DNA of 27,333 bases. Origin: Perkinsela sp. CCAP 1560/9 (taxonomy: Eukaryota; Protista; Euglenozoa: Kinetoplastea). Below the pieces are notes generated by a model. The model was given only the letters and a program-made list of their open reading frames with translations, was not told where the DNA came from and made no database searches. Shown piece by piece: positions 3-23,932 of this stretch. The stretch lies in the NCBI GenBank assembly GCA_965644495.1, contig CBFFSA010000071.1:1-27333 (forward strand), written 5' to 3'. Within the stretch, counting starts at the first letter, position 1; every line of letters starts with the position of its first letter. The position numbers and the translations under genes are program-made.

Positions 3-1238
3 GGAGTTGAAAATAATAACCGGGGCTATACTCATATCCTCGCAATTGTTGATGCCTTCACGGGATACTTGACACTGTTTCCGTTGAAACAAGTCAATAC
101 TAGAGTGATCGCTGACTGTTTGTTGAAATATGTAACTCTACATTCAATGCCACTTGAAATAGTTACAGATGGTGGACCAGAGTTCCGAAAACAACTCTTG
201 AAAGATTTGATGGAGAATTGGGGAATCCATCATTCTAAGATCTCCGCTTACAACCATAAAGGAAATGGTAAAGTCGAGACTATCCATGGTGCTGTGAAAA
301 ACATCATGAGAGCTTTTATGAGAAAATTTGAAAATGACTGGGATTTGCTACTTCCAATGGTGGAATTCGCATATAATACCCAAGTTCATTCAACAACGGG
401 ATACAAACCTTTTACATTGCAATTTGGACGTGCTCCAACGTACCCAATTGACATAACATTACAAACATCCAATCCTGAACTTGTAACTCCGGATGAGTAT
501 GCAAAAATGGTTCACGAGAGAATGGCAGAAATATTTCAGATTGTCAACGAAAAAAGACAAGAATCTGAGGAAAAACGAGTGATTGACTACAATGCTATGC
601 ATTCTACTCAAGTGTTCGAAAAAGGACAATATGTATTACTCCTAGAACACCAAAGAAAAGAACAATTCAATCAGAAATTTGCCCAAAGGACTCAGGAAGA
701 TGTCTTTTTGGTTGAGGAAGTAATCTCTGAACAGACTTACAAAATTAAGAATACCAAAACCGGGTTGATTCTGAAAAACTCTGTTCACGGAAGTCAATTA
801 CGACCATATTATCAAAGAAAAAACCTCCTCGGAGAGGAAGAATTGAAAGAACAAACAACTCAACTTGATCCTGGGAGAGGACATCGAAGTATTCAATATC
901 AAATTACAGAGGAGCGAGAACGCGATAGGAAGTTGGAATATCGAGTCCAGATTCGACCTGCGTATGGAAAGAAAAAATATGAGTGGTGGAGTCATGAAAA
1001 GGTTAAAAAGATTGGTTTGCTTGCTGATTACCTCGAGATGAAAAAGCGCCAAAATTACGGAAATTTCGAATCTTCAACTGCTGTTGAACTGAACTCACCC
1101 AAAACTGCCACAACTTCAGAACCAAGTGAATCAGTCGAGGAACCATGGCTTGATGAAAGTATACGAAGATCAAACAGGAAGAGACGACCCCCCTTGAATC
1201 ATCCAGCGAGAGATCCTGACCAACTCGAGATATTTTGA
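3..1238 (+). CDS. Pol C-terminus: retroviral-type integrase core, GPY/F-like region and degenerate chromodomain (5'-truncated by the window)
   Basis: Frame is open from nt 3 (GYTHILAIVDAFTGY). Motifs IVTDGGPEF (second catalytic D), GNGKVE (catalytic E), WDLLLPMVEFAYNT, HSTTGYKPF and FGR are typical of Ty3/Gypsy integrase. EYRVQ..AYG....W.......LLADY resembles a chromodomain. Confidence 0.93.
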   Translation, partial: GVENNNRGYTHILAIVDAFTGYLTLFPLKQVNTRVIADCLLKYVTLHSMPLEIVTDGGPEFRKQLLKDLMENWGIHHSKISAYNHKGNGKVETIHGAVKNIMRAFMRKFENDWDLLLPMVEFAYNTQVHSTTGYKPFTLQFGRAPTYPIDITLQTSNPELVTPDEYAKMVHERMAEIFQIVNEKRQESEEKRVIDYNAMHSTQVFEKGQYVLLLEHQRKEQFNQKFAQRTQEDVFLVEEVISEQTYKIKNTKTGLILKNSVHGSQLRPYYQRKNLLGEEELKEQTTQLDPGRGHRSIQYQITEERERDRKLEYRVQIRPAYGKKKYEWWSHEKVKKIGLLADYLEMKKRQNYGNFESSTAVELNSPKTATTSEPSESVEEPWLDESIRRSNRKRRPPLNHPARDPDQLEIF

Positions 1239-14132: not shown

Positions 14133-14402
14133 TTTTTTCGGAAAGGTTGGAACGAAATTTGAATTTGAGAAGAGAAACAAAGAAGAAAAGGAAAGGAAAG
14201 AAGTTGAGAAGAACTGAAAGAGAGAGGAAGTTCAACAAATCTGTTTTTTTTGGAGAAACAAAACAAAACGCTCTCCTTTTCAATACGGGAAAATCCTGTG
14301 GTGCCTATGTGGCACTCCATTCTGAGGTTAAAAAGGACTTTTTGTTCATTTTGCGTTTCGGGATGTTGTTTCTGATTTCTGGTTTTCTCCAATTTGAAGA
14401 AA

Positions 14403-15329
14403 ATGGAAAAGGGTAAAGGGAAAAGAAAAAGAACTGCCAACAACAAATATTTTGGGGGTGATTGGGAACCACTTGAGTTCATTGGACCAAAAAAGCGATT
14501 GCGAAAGAACGACGACGATGAAAAGAACGACGACGAAAAGAACGACGACGATGAAAAGAGCGAAAAGAAAAGCCAACAACACAAAAAAAAGACGAACAAG
14601 ACAACAGCGTCAGCGAGAACGACAAACAAGAAGAGGAAATCCCCTTCCATCAACCAAGAACAACAAAAAAAGAAAAAACAGGTGAAGGAAGTGGGAGGAG
14701 ATGGGGTGGTGATGATACAAGAGGGTGGTGGCCAGCAGCAGCAGCAAGGTGGGAGGGGGTTAAAAGAAGTCGTTGAAACAACAACAAGAAGAGAAGATCC
14801 CATTGTGTGTTGTCATTTTGTGGATGCATCTACAACTCAGACTGCTGCTGGATTGCCACAATCTTCAACAATTCACATTTCGTTGTCTTGGTTTGTTAAC
14901 TTCTGTGTTGTTTCGAAATTTGAGGAAAGGTTAAGGTGGTCATGGAAGAATAAGAGACGTGCAATCACAGGGAGTTTTCCTCTGCCTTCTGAGGTGTTTG
15001 ACTTCTTTTTTCAATCTATTGGGACTTCTTTTGAGAATGAGAAAAGAATCAAGAAAATAATTACAAAGGTGGAAGACCTTGAAAAATTGGATCAGAAGTT
15101 TGGATCTTCAACTCGATGGCGCAAATGTGATTTTCCTTTGGAAAATGGAGTGGAAGATGGGAAGAATGCGATTGTTCTTCAATATCTTCAGCCTTGTGGT
15201 ATGTGTTGGCCACCAATTATGATGAAGGCAGAATCCCCACTTGAAATTTTCTATGACAAGAAGACATTGTCCATGAAGTTTTCTGCGTCAGTACAAGGAA
15301 CAAACTCAACTGATGCTGTTCGTTACTGA
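14403..15329 (+). CDS. Hypothetical 308-aa protein: basic/low-complexity N-terminus with NLS-like motifs and a globular C-terminal ~175 aa
   Basis: Uninterrupted ORF with ATG at 14403; KGKRKR and PKKRLRK motifs; normal-complexity C-terminal half; followed by an A-rich 3' region. Confidence 0.65.
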   Translation: MEKGKGKRKRTANNKYFGGDWEPLEFIGPKKRLRKNDDDEKNDDEKNDDDEKSEKKSQQHKKKTNKTTASARTTNKKRKSPSINQEQQKKKKQVKEVGGDGVVMIQEGGGQQQQQGGRGLKEVVETTTRREDPIVCCHFVDASTTQTAAGLPQSSTIHISLSWFVNFCVVSKFEERLRWSWKNKRRAITGSFPLPSEVFDFFFQSIGTSFENEKRIKKIITKVEDLEKLDQKFGSSTRWRKCDFPLENGVEDGKNAIVLQYLQPCGMCWPPIMMKAESPLEIFYDKKTLSMKFSASVQGTNSTDAVRY

Positions 15330-15606
15330 GCCAGAATGCTGCTGTGTGGGGGGGTGGGTGGGTGAGAGGGAGAAAAGAAAGAGGTTTTTGAGATCAAATA
15401 AATAAAAAAATGAGAATATTGAAGAGTTAAAAATAAAAAATTGTCTTGTCTTCAAAAAAAAAGAAAGAAATATTTTTAATATTTAAAAAAGAAAAAGAAA
15501 AAAGAAAAAAGAAAAAGAAAAAGAAAAAAGAAATAAAGGGGGTAAAAAGAAATAAGAAAAAAAAAGAAATTTTGGAAGAAACACTTTTATTTTAAAAAAA
15601 TTGATC

Positions 15607-16767
15607 TTAATCAAGATTCATCCTCTGCCCATCAGAAAAAATCTCTTCTTTTTTTAATCCTTTAGCTTTCAAGAAGGGGTGTTGGAGAAGAAAAATCCCA
15701 ATCCATCTGTTTTCTGGGTTTCCTTCATAATCCCGAATTCCATGCTCAACCAATCTTGAGTCAAGCAAAATCGCATCCCCAACCTTCCATTTGAATGCAG
15801 CATCCAACCCCCCCAACTCCAAGGCCCCTTTTTTCCCTTCTTCCACTTGGATCGGAAACAAAAAGGAAAGGTAATCATTTGGATCTCGGTGAAATTTGGA
15901 TGAACCTTGACCACACATAAAAAGATGGAAAGAACCAAAAGGAAAGTCGTCAAGTTGATCAGTCAGTTGGGCAATTTTTGGTCGATACTTTTTCACACAA
16001 CCAGAAGCAATGTTGGCAATCGGAGCCAATTCAGCATGCAAAAGATTTCGGCTTTCTTCATTTTTCCCCACCTTCCCAGCATGATATATTTTGGGTTTAC
16101 CTTGTTCAGTCCAAAAACCAGACTCAACAAATTGTTTTCTTCCAGAGTCACTTCGCCGAGAATCCCTTTTGGTCTCCCACCAGCTGCTATTCTGCTGTAG
16201 AACATGCGCAAGAGGTTCAATCAAATCTTTCGGAATTAGTTTTGTGAGAAGTTGTGCAATTGGTGTGCAAAGTGAGCGAAGAGGAGGGGAAGGTACCGAT
16301 GACAATGAGGAGGAGGAGGAGGAAGATGAACATGAGGATGAGGAGGAGGAAGAAGAAGAAGAAGAAGAGGCAGAGGAGGAAGAGGATGGAGTTTGTGATG
16401 GTGTTGGAGAAGATAGAGGAAGGGGATCACCTCCTTTCTTTCTTTTCTTTTTTGGGGGAGAGCTTCCTTGACAACAAGAAGAAGAAGAAGAAGAAGGGGA
16501 AGGAGGCTTGATTCCAACAAATACAATTGTGTTTTTGCTGTAGATTTTGACTGGTGATGACTTTGGGCCAAACGGAGTGTTAAGAGCAAAAACATTTTGT
16601 GGTGGATCAGGGACCCACAATTTGTGGATTTGTTTTTTTTTTGCAGGGTTCTTTTGAGATCGTTTTCGTTTTTGATTTCGCTTTTGATTTCGAATTCGAT
16701 TTCGATTTCGTTTGTTTGCCAGAGAATCACAGGGAAAAACAGGAGCTTTACTCATATCATCATCCAT
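15607..16767 (-). CDS. TET/JBP-like 2-oxoglutarate/Fe(II) dioxygenase; a possible extra 5' exon at 17291-17178
   Basis: HxD in SKFHRDPND (H 15889-15891, D 15883-15885), GALELGG, VGDAILLDSR, distal H in VEHGI (15742-15744), 2OG-binding R in ENRWIGIF (15706-15708). Basic NLS-like and Ser-rich N-terminus. The 2OG-Fe(II) fold is well supported; TET/JBP subfamily assignment is from motif style. Confidence 0.78.
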   Translation of the reverse strand: MDDDMSKAPVFPCDSLANKRNRNRIRNQKRNQKRKRSQKNPAKKKQIHKLWVPDPPQNVFALNTPFGPKSSPVKIYSKNTIVFVGIKPPSPSSSSSSCCQGSSPPKKKRKKGGDPLPLSSPTPSQTPSSSSSASSSSSSSSSSSSCSSSSSSSSLSSVPSPPLRSLCTPIAQLLTKLIPKDLIEPLAHVLQQNSSWWETKRDSRRSDSGRKQFVESGFWTEQGKPKIYHAGKVGKNEESRNLLHAELAPIANIASGCVKKYRPKIAQLTDQLDDFPFGSFHLFMCGQGSSKFHRDPNDYLSFLFPIQVEEGKKGALELGGLDAAFKWKVGDAILLDSRLVEHGIRDYEGNPENRWIGIFLLQHPFLKAKGLKKEEIFSDGQRMNLD

Positions 16768-16786
16768 CTTTATCAATTGTTATCTT

Positions 16787-17176
16787 GAAAAAGAGAAGAA
16801 AAGAAATGAGAAGAAAAAAGAAAAAAGAAAAAAAAGAAAAAAGAAAAAGAAAAGAAAAAAAAAAAAAAGAAAAGAAAAAAAAAAAAGAAAAGAAAAAAAA
16901 AAGAGGAACAGAGAAAAGAAAAAGAAAGAAAAAAAAAAGAAAAAAAAGAAAAAAGAAGAGAAAAAGAAGAGAAAGAAAAAGAAGAGAAAAAGAAAAAAGA
17001 TAAAAAAAGAAAAAAAAAGAAAAAAAAAGAAAAAAAAAAGAAAAAAAAAAGAAAAAAGGAAAGAAAAAGAAGAGAAAGAAAAAGAAGAGAAAAAGAAAAA
17101 AGATAAAAAAAGAAAAAAAAAGAAAAAAGGAAAGAAAAAGAAGACAAAGAAAAAGGAAAGAAAAAGAAAAAAAAAA
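16787..17176. repeat. ~390-bp nearly pure A/G low-complexity tract, probably an intron of the dioxygenase gene (minus strand, 17177-16768)
   Basis: Only a handful of pyrimidines on the + strand. On the minus strand it starts GTTTTT at 17177 and can end at AAG|ATG (16768/16767) in phase 0. Confidence 0.8.
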
Positions 17177-17663
17177 CTTTTTTCTTGGCTTTCCATTTTT
17201 TCACTTTCCAAATTATCACAAAAAAGGAGACACTCGGGTCAGTTGAGAGGTTGGGGGGGGGGTGTTGTAGAAGTCGAGGATTACCATTCATTTCCTAGAG
17301 ATGTTTTCCTCCTTCTACGACTCTCCTCCTTCTCTCTCTCTCTCTCTCCTGTTTGTCTTCCAACCAAAAAAAAAAGCTTGTTCAAATAAAGGGTCCCTAT
17401 TTTTTTTTTTTGTTTTCTCCCTTGTCTCTTGTCTCTCTCCAAATATTTTAACTCTCCATTTAATTGGGTTTTCAAAGAGTTCTTTCTAAGTGTGTGGATC
17501 AATTGCCAGAAAAAGGGTTCTGTTTGCCTCTCTTTCTAGGTGTGTGTGTTGTTGAGTTTTTTCTGAGAAGAAGTTTTGAGAAGATTCTTTGTCCCTGCCA
17601 CCCCCCACCTTATTTCCCTCTCTCATTCTTTCATTCAGGTTTAGAAGAAACTAGTTGTGTAGG

Positions 17664-20600
17664 ATGAACATCGACTTTGTTCTTGATGGATCGAAAGGGA
17701 GGATGAAGCGAAAGAAATACAACCCACCAGATCTTTGTGATGATTCCTCGTCCTCCTTTGTTGGAAACAGTGATCTCTCTTCCTCTTCCTCCTCTTTCCT
17801 TCGAGAGGAGCAAGAGACCCTTCTCAAATTTCATTCACACCTGGGGAAAAATCGAACGCAAGAGCCTCCCTCACAGACGTTAACAAATCCAGAACTGAGA
17901 GCCTGTTTTTCCCAATTTGAAGAGAGGATAAAAGGCACAAAACCTCATATTAATCTTTGGTCGCTTGAAGAACTTCTGAAAGTTCAACAAAGGGAAATCC
18001 AGGAGCTGAAAGAGATGCTTCAAGCGAGAGAGGTTCATTGGAGGGATCAAGTGAGTGAGCACACCAAACAATCAGTGCTTATGGGTGCGCTGGCGGAACG
18101 AATCGATTTTCTCCGGTACAAATCAGAGGGAACACGCAAATCGCTCCTTCGGTTACAAAGGAAAGCGAAGAAACACCACTTAGAACGAGATATAAAACAA
18201 ACCCAGAGAGTGAGGAGGATAGAACTCTTCAAAAAGAAGCTGGCAACATTGAGGGACTCCATTTTATTTCTTGAGGACTTTGCGATTGAACTGGAAGTCG
18301 AAAATAAGGATCTCTTAGAAGGAGAGAAGAAAAAACATAAAGTATTTGAGGATGGCTCTCGATGGATGATGAAACTGCTCAAAGCTTTTAGTGTTGGGGC
18401 TCCGGAGAATTCGTTCAATCCAATCCAATTTCTGAAGATGTGGATGTCTCACTTCGTAAATGATTCTCTCCCAGACTTCCAAGCGAAACTATTAAAAGAA
18501 GTGGTTGACCAGAGCCACTTTTCCATCCAAGAGGCGATAAAAATTGATCCAGAGGAAATGGCGACGGTGTTAGATCGAACAGGGATGTCACTTTGTCGTT
18601 ACGAAATTCTGGAGAACAAAGTGAGAGAGATATTGGCGAGAAAAGGATTGGAAGATCTGACCCCCTTACCTTTAATGCATAAGGTGAAAGGAGCGATTCA
18701 ACGGACCCAGAAATTGATCCCCTCTCTCTTTGAGTTCGATGATCCACCTAAGAGAACGAACAGACAAAAGAAGTTGATGGGTATAGCGTGTTGTCGACTT
18801 GCTTCTGTGGTTGAATGGATTTGTTTTGCATTGACTGGGGTCTCCGATATTGGAAAGGCTGCGACATGGAAGGTACATGCCGATGGAAGGAGTTTTTGTA
18901 AAGGGGTTAATCAAGTTGTTCTTTCAGTCCAACCAATTGGCCTTCCCTTGTGGCATTTCAATGAAGGTCAAACAAAAGGAGAGTCAGACCCAGCGAAAAA
19001 CAAGCAGTGGGCCAAAGAGAGCTCTTACCTGGTCTTCCCTTTTTTAATTTTCCAAGGGGGCGAAAAGAAACACACTTTTCAAGAGGCGATTCCAAACCAT
19101 GTGTTTTCTGACATGATTCGCTTAGAACATGATGGCCTCCATTTTATGCCCAGCCAAAGCCCAAACGAAGAGAATATTTATCGGAGGGGAACTCTCCCAG
19201 GTTGCGAAGAGGGCTCAGTGAAGTGGTGCAGTGGAGTTTTGTTTGAATTATCTTCTCCGCTCCCAGAATGGAGTCCTCCCACTCGTCATTGGAACAAAAC
19301 AGCATCAACCTCAACAATGGATGTGGTGGGGGAGGAAGGTCAAAGTGGAGAGGGGGCAAAGGGAAAGCCTGAAGACATTGTGAATGAGAAAAGTCTTCTT
19401 TGGAAATCAATTGGAGGGGATGTGGAAGAATGTGATGATGATGATGCTGACAATGATGGGAATGATGATGAGATGAGTCAACAACAATCTTGGGAAGGAA
19501 AAGAAGAAGAATTGCGAAAAGATCCATTATCAACCACTCTGGAATCCCTCTCAAGATTAACTCGAAATCTGATACCATTTGGTGCGGTGGATGCAATGGG
19601 AGTTCAGTTATTTTGGGACCCATCTACTGGCTGGAGAATTGTTCCAATTGAAGAGAACCCTTTTCAGTGGAATCATAACCATCACCCCCCCTCTTCCTCG
19701 CTTGAACATTCTTCAATCAGTCATCAGGAGGAGAGCTCCCCTTCTCGAGAATCCATTGGGAGGAGGGATGATCCTTTTTTCCCCTTTCCTCCTTCTAGTG
19801 GTTCTGTTTCCCCTGAATCACCACCACAATCACCACTGATCTCTTTTTCTCAGTCCCCTCTTCTCAATGACCAAACCTCACAAAATTTATCAGCACCATT
19901 TGTTGATTTGTCTCGTCCCCCAATGGGTTATTCTCCATCATTATCATTCCCATCACAACAATCCCTATTCTTGCCACATTCACAACCCCATTCTCAAAAA
20001 AATTCTCTTTCCCCAATTCTTTCTTTTGAAAATCTCTTTCTTTCACCAGAAGAATTTCCATTTGATTTCTCCTTGTCTGATGGTTTCATTTTGCAAAATG
20101 ATGATGATGATGATGTTGGTGATTCCTTCATATCATCTATGCAAGATGTTGGTGGTTTATCATCAATGCGAGATCACGATGCGATATCATTTTTGAAAGA
20201 ATCTCCTGCTGCTGCTTTGTTGGAACCAACAGTACAAAGAGTTGATACAACAAAGAAGCAGCTGCCCTCTCTTCCTTTTGTCCACCATTGTGTCTTTATT
20301 ATGTGCGGGGACCTGGCAAGCATTTGGGCCTTGTTTGGTTTTTGTTCTGGGATCTTTGATCAACAACATTGCCCTTATTGTACTATTGCAAGAGTGGACC
20401 AATGGCTTGGATCATCATCTGGGCCAGATCCAGTCTCTCGAAGGAAATGGTCTCAAGACACTCCACTCCCTGTTTCTCCAAGCCGATTTGTGATGTGCCT
20501 CCTTCACTGTACGTTGAGAATTGGAGATTTTGCAATTGAGAATTTGTTGAGCGATTGTCTGAATGAACAATACCTTGGTTTGCCCAAATCTCAGAGACCT

Positions 20601-21175
20601 GTTTTTCATGGAAAGAAAGGAAAAGCCAATTCTTCTCCGCAGTATTTTTTGGTGGATCGAAGTCTCAATGGGTTAAAAAAGAAGGAATTGAGGGAGAAAA
20701 TTTGCTCTCACCTGAAGCAAAAAGTAGGAAGGCAGGAATGGAGGAAAGCATTTAAAAATATTTCTATCTCTGTTCAACTGGAAGGATTGGGAATGGATGA
20801 GAAAGAGGAAAAGGGAAAGAAAAAGAGAAAAAGAAAAGCAGTTGTTGGTGGTTTTTGCCCAAGCGTTGCTACTGTACCTCAACTCACAGTCATTGCCAAC
20901 AAGCTATCAGTGAGTAAATTTACTGATGAAATAGGAGCTGATGCAGCCAAGGAAGTTGAGAGATTAACAGCTGCCAGCTTTAAAAGTGTAAACGATGAGG
21001 CAAAGAGGAAGTTTGGAAAAGGAGGTGGGAAGAAGATTCAGCTTACATGGAGACTTTTTTCTGCTTGGTATTATGAACGAAAGGAAGAAAGAGATGATGG
21101 GAAAGCAGAACAAGAAGTTTGTGGCCAAGATGGTGGTGAAGGCAGCTCAATGGGTGAGGATGATGATGATGATGT

Positions 21176-21216
<41 letters not shown>

Positions 21217-22277
21217 GTGATGATGGTGATGATGATGATTGCTTATCTTCTCTTCCTGAATCAAGCTTTGAGACAGAAAGGGCGGAAGAGGAGAGTCCCT
21301 CAATCCTTCTTGCATCTGGGCAGGATGACACAACTTCTCCTCTATTAGAAGATATGTTGATGGCTGATGATTTGATTGAAACTGATGAAAGATTGACAAC
21401 TCAATCAATGCTTAAATTGGCCAAAGTTTTTGCGGATCTTCACCTTCCTTTGCGATTTTTTGTTGAAACTGATGGAGAGCTGCAAGTTGGGCGGTACTCT
21501 GGCAAAGAGATGAAGAAAATCTTTCAAAATGCGAATGAAATATTTTCTTGCAATCCCAATGCTGCAAAGAAACACAATGGCCTTTCTCCTGCAAGATTAT
21601 GGTCACAGTTTTATGATATTTTTTCTCTAATATCTTCTGATCCTCCGAAAGGAAAAACTCGAAGAGAGGTCGCTGCTGATTTTACAACTCGCTTTCAAGT
21701 TTGGAAGAGTTCATTTCTTGGGGATGGGGGGTTTTGTCGAAAAGAATGGCGAATTTATTTTCACATCTTGGAAATGCATGTTGGGGAAGTCTATGAAAAA
21801 TTTGGGAATTTGAAGACCTGGGGCAATGAGGCAGGTGAGCATCTGCATGCACTAGATCGGATCTATTTTTTTCAGAGAAAGCGATATGGCTTAAATGCCC
21901 TAAATCATGCAGTTCTCACAAATGCCTATCAACTCCGAATGGGTCATTCTTCAATGGGGAATTACCAAATTCCTCAGCAAATTCCTGAGCGTGTTAAAAA
22001 TGTTCAACCAAAGCTTTCTCGTGTTTGTGAAATTCCTGCACTATTTACACCATCAACATCATCAACGCTATCTTCATCTTCTTTGCTCTCAACATCATCA
22101 TCTTCATCTTCTTTGCTCTCAACATCATCTTCATCTTCTTTGCTCTTGACATCATCTTCATCTCCTTTTCTCCCATCACATTTCTCCTGTGAGAATTGTG
22201 GAAAAGGGCAATATTATGATCAATGTTGTCACATTGATTTATGTGAACAATGTCTCCGAGATCATCAATGTAATTGA
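17664..22277 (+). CDS. RAG1/Transib-superfamily DDE transposase-like protein, 1537 aa, with N-terminal coiled coil, large low-complexity inserts and C-terminal Cys/His finger
   Basis: WKVHADGR (D407, nt 18882), MCGDL (D883, nt 20310), CPYC (nt 20370-20381), CLLHCTLRIG (H948), RYSGKEMKKI, and YFHILEMHVGEVYEKFGNLKTWGNEAGE (E1392, nt 21837). The last block aligns without gaps to RAG1 [28 protein letters not shown]. Confidence 0.88.
21159..21239 (+). repeat. (GAT)n microsatellite encoding a poly-Asp tract inside the transposase
   Basis: 27 consecutive GAT/GTT/GGT triplets, in frame. Confidence 0.95.
22071..22163 (+). repeat. Coding minisatellite, about 3.3 copies of a 27-30-bp unit (tcttcatcttctttgctctcaacatca[tca])
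   Basis: Direct tandem copies encoding SSSSLLSTS repeats just before the C-terminal Cys/His cluster. Confidence 0.9.
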
Positions 22278-22664
22278 GAAACTTTCGAAATCAAATCAGT
22301 TCATCTTCTTCACTTTTGATTGAACTTGCCATTATTGTCGATATTACTCCGTAATTTGTTTTTGGTTTTTGTTTTTTGGTTTTTGTTTTGTTTTTTGTTT
22401 TGTTGTCATTTTTGAAAATAAACTTCTTCATTTTTTCGCATTCCCCTTGACTTTTTTTACACACCCTTGAAAACTCTCCCAAATCATCTTTCAACACAGT
22501 GAAAAGTTGTCAGAACTGAAATATCAATTTTGCAAGTTTTTAATGATGAAATCAATTGTTTTTTTCTCTTTCAGACCTCTCACAATCCCTGAAAGATATC
22601 TACAACTCTCAGATTTGAAAAAAAAAAACCAGATTCCTTGTTAGGGGGAACAACTCATCGGCAA

Positions 22665-23932
22665 ATGTCCAACAACCGAAAAAACTACTGCAGCATCCAA
22701 TTTCGTTCAAATTTTAGAATCAATTTTATTGATTCCAGTTCTTTTAAAATCCCAAATTTTAGTTCCAACAGACACTTTCCAAATGAGATTGAAGTTTCAC
22801 AAAAAAAAAAAAATTGGTTCTCAAAAAGAAAAAAAAGGGAAAAAAGAATATTTCCAAATAAAGACTCGAAGGATCCTTCCAGTCCAAACAAAGGTTTCGA
22901 CATCAGCACCAGCGTTTTCGCTGATATTGAAAAAGAGGTTGAAAGGATCAGAGAGGGTTTGCCACCAATGTAACCAACCAAGAAGCACAAATGAGGTGCT
23001 TTTGTCACACTGTCTTGGAGATTTTCTTTTCTCTTTCCACTGATGTTTCTCGAAAATCCCGGTCGACCACAAAAACCTTGACTCTCTCATGGACACAGCA
23101 CTCTTCCCACTCACATCGAACTGAGGAACGACGTCGATCTCAACTTCTGAAAGCAATTGAATTTCTGTACCATACTCACCAAAGAAATTTAATTGGGTTC
23201 ACTCACCCCTGAGAATGCAAAACTGATTGTGCAATCCCAATCCTTCAAGGATTGCACACCAACCCTCATTTTCGAGAGGGAATTCAGTCGATAATTCAAC
23301 TTGATCTGAGTCGTTGGGAAGTGGATGAAGGGCCCGAGGTTGGGTGGTTGATCACACAAAGATGAGCAAGTATTTTTTTATCTTCTTTTTATCTCAAATT
23401 TGCGAATCACTCAGAGGTTGCTGCGATTTCAGTGCAAAACAGCAAACCATTCATCCCACCGAAACAATTGGGCTCTATCAGATCCGGCTCCGATGTAAAT
23501 ACTCTGAAAAGTATCTGTGGTTCCCAGTTTGAAAACTGATGAGAGTGTTCCTCATGGATTTCGGTCTCTATGTGATATCTTCTTCATAACCGAGTTTCTT
23601 TGTATCTGACAGTCCCTCTCTTCAAAGATGATTGGATTTAGCTTCATCGGTGGCACAACTTGAGTGGGGATAAGTATATTCTTGTTAGTATTTTTGTTGA
23701 TGGAGCCCCCAAACAAATGAGGAGGGATGACCAACATTATGGCAAGAGTTCTGAATTTTCGAGGCTGTGCTCTCCAAGACATGAGTTAAGACATGTCTTG
23801 GGTTGGGGGAACTGATCTTGGTGAAAAATCAGAACAAATCCGAACAGTTTTCATGATTTTGATAAAGAAATTGAAAAATTGCAGGAGGACTCTGAGCTTC
23901 AACTTTCGCTATTTCTTTATTCCAAATGGTGA
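22665..23932 (+). pseudogene. Decayed ubiquitin-specific protease (peptidase C19)-like gene
   Basis: USP-like segments occur in the expected order across stops and frameshifts: IGFTHP*ECKTDCAIPILQGLHTNPHFREGI (Cys-box-like), KYFFIFFLSQICESL, IGLYQIRLRCKY, KYILVSIFV...QHY (His-box-like), LSLFLYSKW*. Divergent, so the assignment is tentative. Confidence 0.4.

Follow-up and report, generated by a model that had tools for sequence, protein, structure and literature searches.

A protist DNA transposon that probably combines a RAG1-related transposase with a TET/JBP-like dioxygenase

Introduction

What is a reading frame of 1,537 codons with RAG1-like catalytic residues doing in the genome of a protist? 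The frame lies in a window (the whole stretch of DNA analysed here, 27,333 nucleotides from Perkinsela sp. CCAP 1560/9) in which a first-pass annotation, made from the sequence letters, saw a giant, intact RAG1-like transposase that might inform on the origin of RAG. We found that the frame is part of an 8,649-bp unit of three open reading frames (ORFs) with fixed ends, which occurs at five or more sites in both intact and dead copies (Table 1). The first-pass annotation mentioned neither this bounded unit nor its dioxygenase gene. The unit is likely to be a cut-and-paste DNA transposon, autonomous and recently active, that represents a distinct lineage of the CMCT clade and carries its own DNA-base oxidase. 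Its transposase is distantly related to RAG1 and most probably not a RAG ancestor.

Table 1. Features of the element, in positions of the window
Feature	Position	Strand	Basis or remark
Whole DNA transposon (probable), 8,649 bp, 5'-CAATA...TATTG-3'	14281-22929	+	Homology limits of copies L023, L031, L032 and L033
Left imperfect terminal inverted repeat (TIR), ~30 bp	14281-14312	+	Alignment with the reverse-complemented right end
Right imperfect TIR	22898-22929	-	TIR alignment; public contig ends
ORF3, 308 aa, basic/acidic N-terminus, convergent with the dioxygenase	14403-15329	+	Inside all copies
TET/JBP-like dioxygenase, Fe(II)/2-oxoglutarate type (HxD..H..R), in head-to-head orientation to the transposase	15607-16776	-	ESM Atlas, fold, motif
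Divergent intergenic region with ~390-bp A/G tract	16777-17663	.	Sequence and TRF; arrangement shared with L003
Transposase, 1,537 aa, CMCT-clade (Transib/RAG1/Chapaev-like) DDE, intact	17664-22277	+	Motifs, profile and fold searches
First large insert, Ser/Pro/acid-rich, ~aa 530-870, between D407 and D883	19250-20270	+	pLDDT mostly 30-40
Second insert, ~aa 1000-1240, basic helical part and poly-Asp, between H948 and the GRYSG block	20660-21380	+	D2-E spacing
C-terminal Cys/His-rich tail after a Ser-rich linker	22179-22277	+	7 Cys and 3 His within 33 aa

An intact transposase with two large inserts

The transposase occupies a single open frame with a lone, terminal stop, as first described, and each residue singled out by the first-pass annotation is present at its position: D407 (in HADG), D883 (CGDL), C903 and C906, H948 (LLHC), H1367 and H1372 (YFHILEMH), and E1392. 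The YFH..H..G..W..E..E block, said to match RAG1 without gaps, indeed aligns in this way to the mouse RAG1 sequence of the PDB. In an alignment of 24 rows that includes compact relatives (720-980 aa), the three acidic residues, the CxxC, the LH histidine and the H-x4-H line up, and these residues are conserved in the 23 related sequences with few exceptions, which are fragments or misaligned rows. The protein reads as a CMCT transposase, with a DDE triad and with C(2)C and H(3-4)H lying after the second D and before the E. The SxxCxxC motif of Transib lacks its S here, where the sequence is QQHCPYC.

The giant size of the protein is due to two low-complexity inserts. D1 and D2 are 476 aa apart in the window transposase versus 82-290 in the compact relatives, and D2 and E are 509 aa apart versus 224-233; the latter spacing is 206-214 in Transib and 253 in RAG1 (PMC1131882). 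The C-terminal tail, judged by its composition, is probably a zinc finger that would bind metal, and a similar tail is retained in the homologue at locus L003 (E=1.6e-5), which has a probable 83-122-nt intron inside its first insert. A search for transcripts of the transposase and dioxygenase genes gave none, which counts against the explanation that we prefer.

A divergent member of the Transib/RAG1/Chapaev branch

Pfam and PDB searches with the single window protein were blank, including for Pfam RAG1 and RING, and a word search found two homologues. Significance appears only at the profile level: against structures, the family profile from the 24-row alignment matched HzTransib (E=2.4e-5) and mouse RAG1 (E=0.28). 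HMMER with a four-sequence profile against 1.84 billion representatives returned 28 matches, none recognisable as a RAG1 or Transib sequence; the ten that were looked up are ENA or JGI entries, all of them either unnamed or hypothetical, and none of ten scanned had a RAG1 family match. No related loci were found in the metagenome and viral contigs searched.

The AlphaFold model of the transposase covers aa 303-1460 with a mean pLDDT of 53; it becomes confident only at about H948, and around D407 its pLDDT is below 50. Its top six VIA matches are BbRAG1L (Z 11.8), RAG1 (Z 9.8-10.3) and HzTransib (Z 9.9), compared with Z 6.7 for the P element, and the RAG1/Transib-type fold that this model suggests is best supported in the half from D883 to E1392. 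In Foldseek, rows 1 to 19 are all RAG1, RAG1L or Transib, none of them significant. These rankings argue for a mode of action like that of RAG1 and Transib rather than of P or hAT, in a comparison to which the PDB libraries contributed no competing structure from Chapaev, EnSpm, Plavaka or ESTA. Searching the ESM Atlas structures with the full model gave nothing informative. This part of the first-pass annotation, the reading as a RAG1/Transib-type DDE transposase, is supported by the VIA ranking and by the Foldseek rows.

The closest compact relatives (P0022, P0031 and P0030-type) have weak, sub-threshold matches to DUF1280, the Chapaev family (best E 6e-4). In the Atlas, the clusters nearest to them are some without a name, DUF1280 and RAG1_RNase_H, at near-equal scores. 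The window transposase itself has no DUF1280 match. The tree that we built covers this family alone. By profile and fold searches, the window transposase belongs to the Transib/RAG1/Chapaev branch of CMCT transposases, to which it adds a divergent lineage.

Ends of the element

At the left junction, homology starts at 14281 after five unrelated flanks (window, L023, L031, L032 and L033). The preceding base is T in four flanks and A in L033, which rules out a start at T14280. At the right junction, homology with L023 runs to 22929 once a nested, 418-bp SINE-like insert with its own duplication is skipped; this insert interrupts L023 at 22910, a candidate boundary that was rejected because the element continues behind it. 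Public contigs show loose ends behind 22929, with at least two further right junctions at that base. The score of the TIR pair was matched by one of 5,000 random pairs (null 2e-4). The termini are of the 5'-CA..TG-3' type of CMCT elements and begin with CAATA, not with the CAC heptamer of Transib TIRs. A Helitron was dismissed for want of a CTRR end.

No target-site duplication (TSD) of 2-5 bp was found at the two sites for which both ends are available (TTTT|AAAA and CCAT|TTTT); the 5-bp flanks, CTTTT/AAAAA in the window and TCCAT/TTTTC in L023, likewise form no 5-bp TSD as in Transib. The window flanks could be mis-joined, since identical copies may be collapsed in its assembly (G000) and the two flanks may therefore stem from different insertions. 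L023 sits in a Copia pol gene, whose reading frame fits a duplication of 0 or 1 bp. We had at first taken the long open Copia frame to argue for no TSD at all, and dropped this because the homologous frame of the Copia RT motif presumably needs one base fewer at this site. An uninterrupted Copia copy, sought in G000 as an empty site, was not found. A clean 2-5-bp TSD is usual for CMCT elements, and its lack counts against the transposon reading that we prefer; a 0-1-bp duplication, if real, sets the element apart from every CMCT, Transib and RAG element described, for which it is 2-5 bp.

Copies and relatives

Further copies are found on contigs of the ENA assembly ERZ24900291 and on one JGI contig. 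Copy L032, which lies at another site, matches the window over 8,054 bp without a substitution, and its 1,537-aa protein is identical; this indicates very recent movement. L031 (99.6% identity) is broken at 22049, L023 has 97.8% identity, and L033 is inserted in an ABCG-type transporter gene. As ERZ24900291 probably stems from the same organism or culture, these copies speak for mobility and not for taxonomic spread. G000 has one intact copy and, on contig C63, an old 40% remnant.

The L003 relative keeps the transposase-dioxygenase pair head-to-head, with 47-57% transposase identity and a different right flank. Its transposase differs from that of the window at a dN of 0.28-0.36, with dS saturated. 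Recent activity and selection, the alternatives that the first-pass annotation had deduced from the uninterrupted frame, are both supported, by the identical L032 copy and by this dN. The only other gene of the dioxygenase family found in G000 lies on contig C76, tail-to-tail with an intron-split set of ORFs in which the transposase motifs occur in the same order (hhalign E=0.025, HMM blank), a call made at the motif level; no TIR was found around this pair. The spliced models of L003 and C76 were searched exon by exon and not joined. A dioxygenase homologue, L018, has no transposase within its 4.3-kb contig, which counts against our preferred explanation.

A TET/JBP-like dioxygenase and ORF3

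The divergently oriented gene has the HxD..H facial triad and the 2OG-binding Arg, placed in a DSBH fold by its model, that mark TET/JBP enzymes, and its HxDxND is invariant in five homologues. In the ESM Atlas, 25 of 30 matches are to PF12851 Tet_JBP (score 0.95), the nearest clusters being largely phage TET/JBP, and hmmscan against Pfam HMMs gave no match. VIA, run on a model of pLDDT 55, returned NgTET1 as best match (Z 7.9), TET2 (Z 6.6) and CcTet (Z 6.1), with a viral prolyl hydroxylase (Z 7.2) counted as tied; the best Foldseek match is CcTet (E=0.5). That the TET assignment draws on a language-model match and on this low-confidence model counts against our explanation, in which the product is probably a DNA-demethylating enzyme. 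Presumably, the intergenic region between the two genes serves as their shared promoter region.

ORF3 has no meaningful Pfam match and, as a guess based on composition, is most likely a nuclear helper that binds DNA or chromatin. Its weak relatives on C63 (E=0.006) and C76 (E=0.018) lie near decayed transposases. The exact ORF3 protein is on record from an MMETSP transcript and is also present in EukProt, which, with eukaryotic genes in the window that are split by introns, fits a protist host. ORF3, the dioxygenase and the transposase are the only genes between the TIRs; no RAG2L was found there, nor a kelch or PHD match. Outside the element, the gene on the left is a dynamin, and the convergent ORF on the right, considered as a RAG2L candidate, is a glutamate synthase instead.

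CpG decay and a proposed life cycle

Of 130 substitutions between L023 and the window, 120 are C>T or G>A. C>T changes hit 73 of the 151 CpGs, at a rate of 24% per CpG base versus 1.5% for other C/G and 0.15% for A/T, and this decay produced D407N, seven stops and frameshifts. A second decayed copy, on contigs of run X1, has 11 listed changes, eight of them at CpG and ten not shared with L023. For the transposase and dioxygenase genes the observed/expected ratio of CpG lies at 0.43-0.44, compared with about 0.65 for host exons and 0.67 for ORF3. C>T at CpG is the product of 5-methyl-CpG deamination, and the CpG-specific decay of dead copies therefore points to 5mC as the host mark: judged by their sequence, these copies carry mutations typical of methylation silencing.

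By analogy with RAG1/Transib enzymology, the transposase would bind the imperfect CAATA ends, with D407, D883 and E1392 holding the catalytic metals and C903, C906, H1367 and H1372 binding zinc in a C2H2 site, and the element would be excised and then re-inserted. The host may mark element copies by CpG methylation, and the TET/JBP-like enzyme might oxidise the 5mC of the element and delay its silencing, a step that we propose less firmly than the cut-and-paste chemistry. Copies that lose this contest would decay by deamination. Two observations count against this picture: unmutated copies may simply be young, and an exon-wise search of G000 for a C5 methyltransferase was blank, which is weak evidence in an assembly that is partial and intron-rich. 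The function of transposon-borne TET/JBP genes is without experimental validation (PMC12730594), and the identical intact copies beside CpG-decayed ones make the anti-silencing hypothesis directly testable in this family.

Alternative readings

The same mobile element could carry an enzyme that acts on thymine (yielding 5hmU or base-J-like marks) or on 6mA, and whose role is to mark the DNA of the element or shield it, not to remove 5mC. Thymine is also a substrate of NgTET1, and 5hmC is undetected in Naegleria (PMC12344493); CcTET acts on 6mA (PMC12730594); the phage character of the nearest Atlas clusters and the blank methyltransferase search are in keeping with this. We nevertheless regard it as unlikely, given that dead copies have decayed strongly and specifically at CpG, a sign of 5mC as the host mark. 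Less likely still is a domesticated transposase-TET pair with a host function that has been duplicated passively. The single intact copy in G000, purifying selection and an L003 homologue that has an intron but lacks an obvious TIR would suit it. The copies, however, share exact ends and have TIRs, identical ones occur at unrelated sites, and coding sequence has been hit by insertion; this makes the reading very improbable and largely refutes it for the window family, the L003 relative excepted.

The best solved-structure matches and the gapless YFH..E block suggest a true RAG1L or a basal Transib, which would shed light on how V(D)J recombination arose. These motifs are common to the whole CMCT clade, however, and the other CMCT families offered no competing structure. 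With no RAG2L in the element and a glutamate synthase beside it, CAATA instead of CAC ends, no 5-bp TSD, no S in SxxCxxC, and neither a Pfam RAG1 match nor a RAG1 or Transib among the HMMER matches, we hold this reading to be improbable, if somewhat less so than domestication. The special link to RAG1 or to the origin of RAG drawn in the first-pass annotation thus finds no support, and the element has little bearing on that question. A bolder form of the transposon reading, for which we see some chance but which remains tentative, is that of a new, superfamily-level protist CMCT lineage that is still transposing, with a 0-1-bp target duplication and a self-encoded TET that erases host CpG methylation. 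If true, it would provide an intact, small system for probing the anti-silencing role of transposon TET genes. The family may also bring to light a transposase of RAG fold that captures its target in another geometry.

Comparison with known elements

A protist RAG1L-RAG2L transposon has been published from Aureococcus (PMC9435367), and finding a RAG1-like protein outside metazoans is therefore no novelty as such. The window transposase resembles RAG1/RAG1L (ProtoRAG, AanRAGL; PMC9435367) in its fold (Z 9.8-11.8), its gapless YFH..H..E and its D-CxxC spacing of 20, while the element is unlike theirs in having no RAG2L, no RSS-like bipartite CAC TIR, no 5-bp TSD, and no Pfam RAG1 or RING match. 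Transib (HzTransib, PDB 6PQN) provides the best profile match and the same catalytic and zinc residues, with a fold Z of 9.9, but has CACAATG-type TIRs, a 5-bp TSD, a single gene of ~500-700 aa and the shorter D2-E spacing given above (PMC1131882), none of which is found here. Likeness to Chapaev (DUF1280, PF06918) is limited to the compact relatives, with their sub-threshold matches and the DUF1280 cluster among their nearest Atlas matches; the window transposase and its element have no DUF1280 match, CAC ends or 3-4-bp TSD, and Chapaev3 has CAC TIRs and a 3-bp TWA TSD (PMC3014272).

TET-carrying DNA transposons have been described from 11 fungal lineages (PMC12730594), and our element would extend them beyond fungi; a limited literature search found no published TET-carrying transposon in a protist, nor this transposase lineage. 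The fungal TET+ ESTA, EnSpm and PlavakaB elements (Kojima 2025, PMC12730594) share with it a CMCT DDE transposase in which C(2)C and H(3-4)H occur, ends of the CA..TG type and a TET/JBP cargo inside, and ESTA transposases were likewise recognised through their similarity to RAG1. Compared by description only, the element differs from these in its protist host, its CAATA ends, the lack of a visible TA or 2-3-bp TSD, and a 1,537-aa transposase with two inserts. The Plavaka element of the red alga Bostrychia (bioRxiv 10.1101/2025.02.11.637652) has, to judge by the lack of a Plavaka Pfam match in the window protein, a transposase of another lineage, and its PAG3 oxygenase is not described as TET/JBP in the text consulted; it is like ours in being a multi-gene CMCT element outside fungi with a 2OG-oxygenase as an accessory gene.

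Relatives of the element and their possible cargo

Two genes follow P0031, a distant compact relative of the window transposase: an HxD-motif ORF, by eye a possible 2OG oxygenase, and a SET-domain gene (E=4e-10). Judging from these neighbours, chromatin-modifying cargo may also be present in relatives of the window element. A further, putative CMCT-type transposase gene, on contig C76 of the searched assembly (G000), is split by an intron, has a frameshift at a homopolymer and is paired with a second TET-like gene; no TIR was found around this pair. The remnant on contig C63 contains TGA stops and an ORF3-like piece, with LINE insertions around it.

A 370-bp contig, recovered in three runs, shares about 90% identity with the part of the transposase gene at window 21321-21509, with half of the listed changes silent; it represents a further subfamily. 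A dioxygenase homologue (38%) lies on a compact 4.3-kb contig (L018), within which no neighbouring transposase was found.

Coordinates of related loci and accompanying features
Feature	Location
P0031, then HxD-motif ORF and SET-domain gene	L025:3775-6547
Second TET-like gene, tail-to-tail with intron-split transposase	G000:C76:2571-9777 (L016)
Related-element remnant, old, internally deleted	G000:C63:14418-16400 and 21001-21249 (L007, L008)
Bacterial-looking intronless genes	G000:C63:34300-41569 (L015)
Dioxygenase homologue	L018:584-1477
ABCG-type transporter frame	L033:1-944
SINE-like repeat	L023:14742-15159 and L023:4295-4712
Junction repeat	window 22930-23097
Integrase ORF, C-terminal part	window 69-1238 (+)

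Insertions, repeats and flanks

In the copy at L033, an uninterrupted ABCG-type transporter frame leads directly into the left end of the element, possibly representing a chimeric transcript from insertion in a host gene. The dead copy L023 contains, 19 bp from its right end, a nested 418-bp, poly-A-tailed SINE-like repeat with a target duplication of ~14 bp; C63 likewise carries this repeat.

The first base outside the right junction of the window element is also the first base of a repeat of ~170 bp. This repeat has an 86% copy on contig C58 and further copies in public contigs, where the upstream sequence differs; it could be a small repeat in its own right, or it could point to a mis-joined flank. 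C63 combines eukaryotic repeats with bacterial-looking genes (by eye pilin-like, leucyl aminopeptidase-like and alanine dehydrogenase-like), for which a chimeric contig or endosymbiont DNA is possible. At the left edge of the window, a retroviral-type integrase ORF (faint rve match, E=0.006) is probably an LTR retrotransposon remnant.
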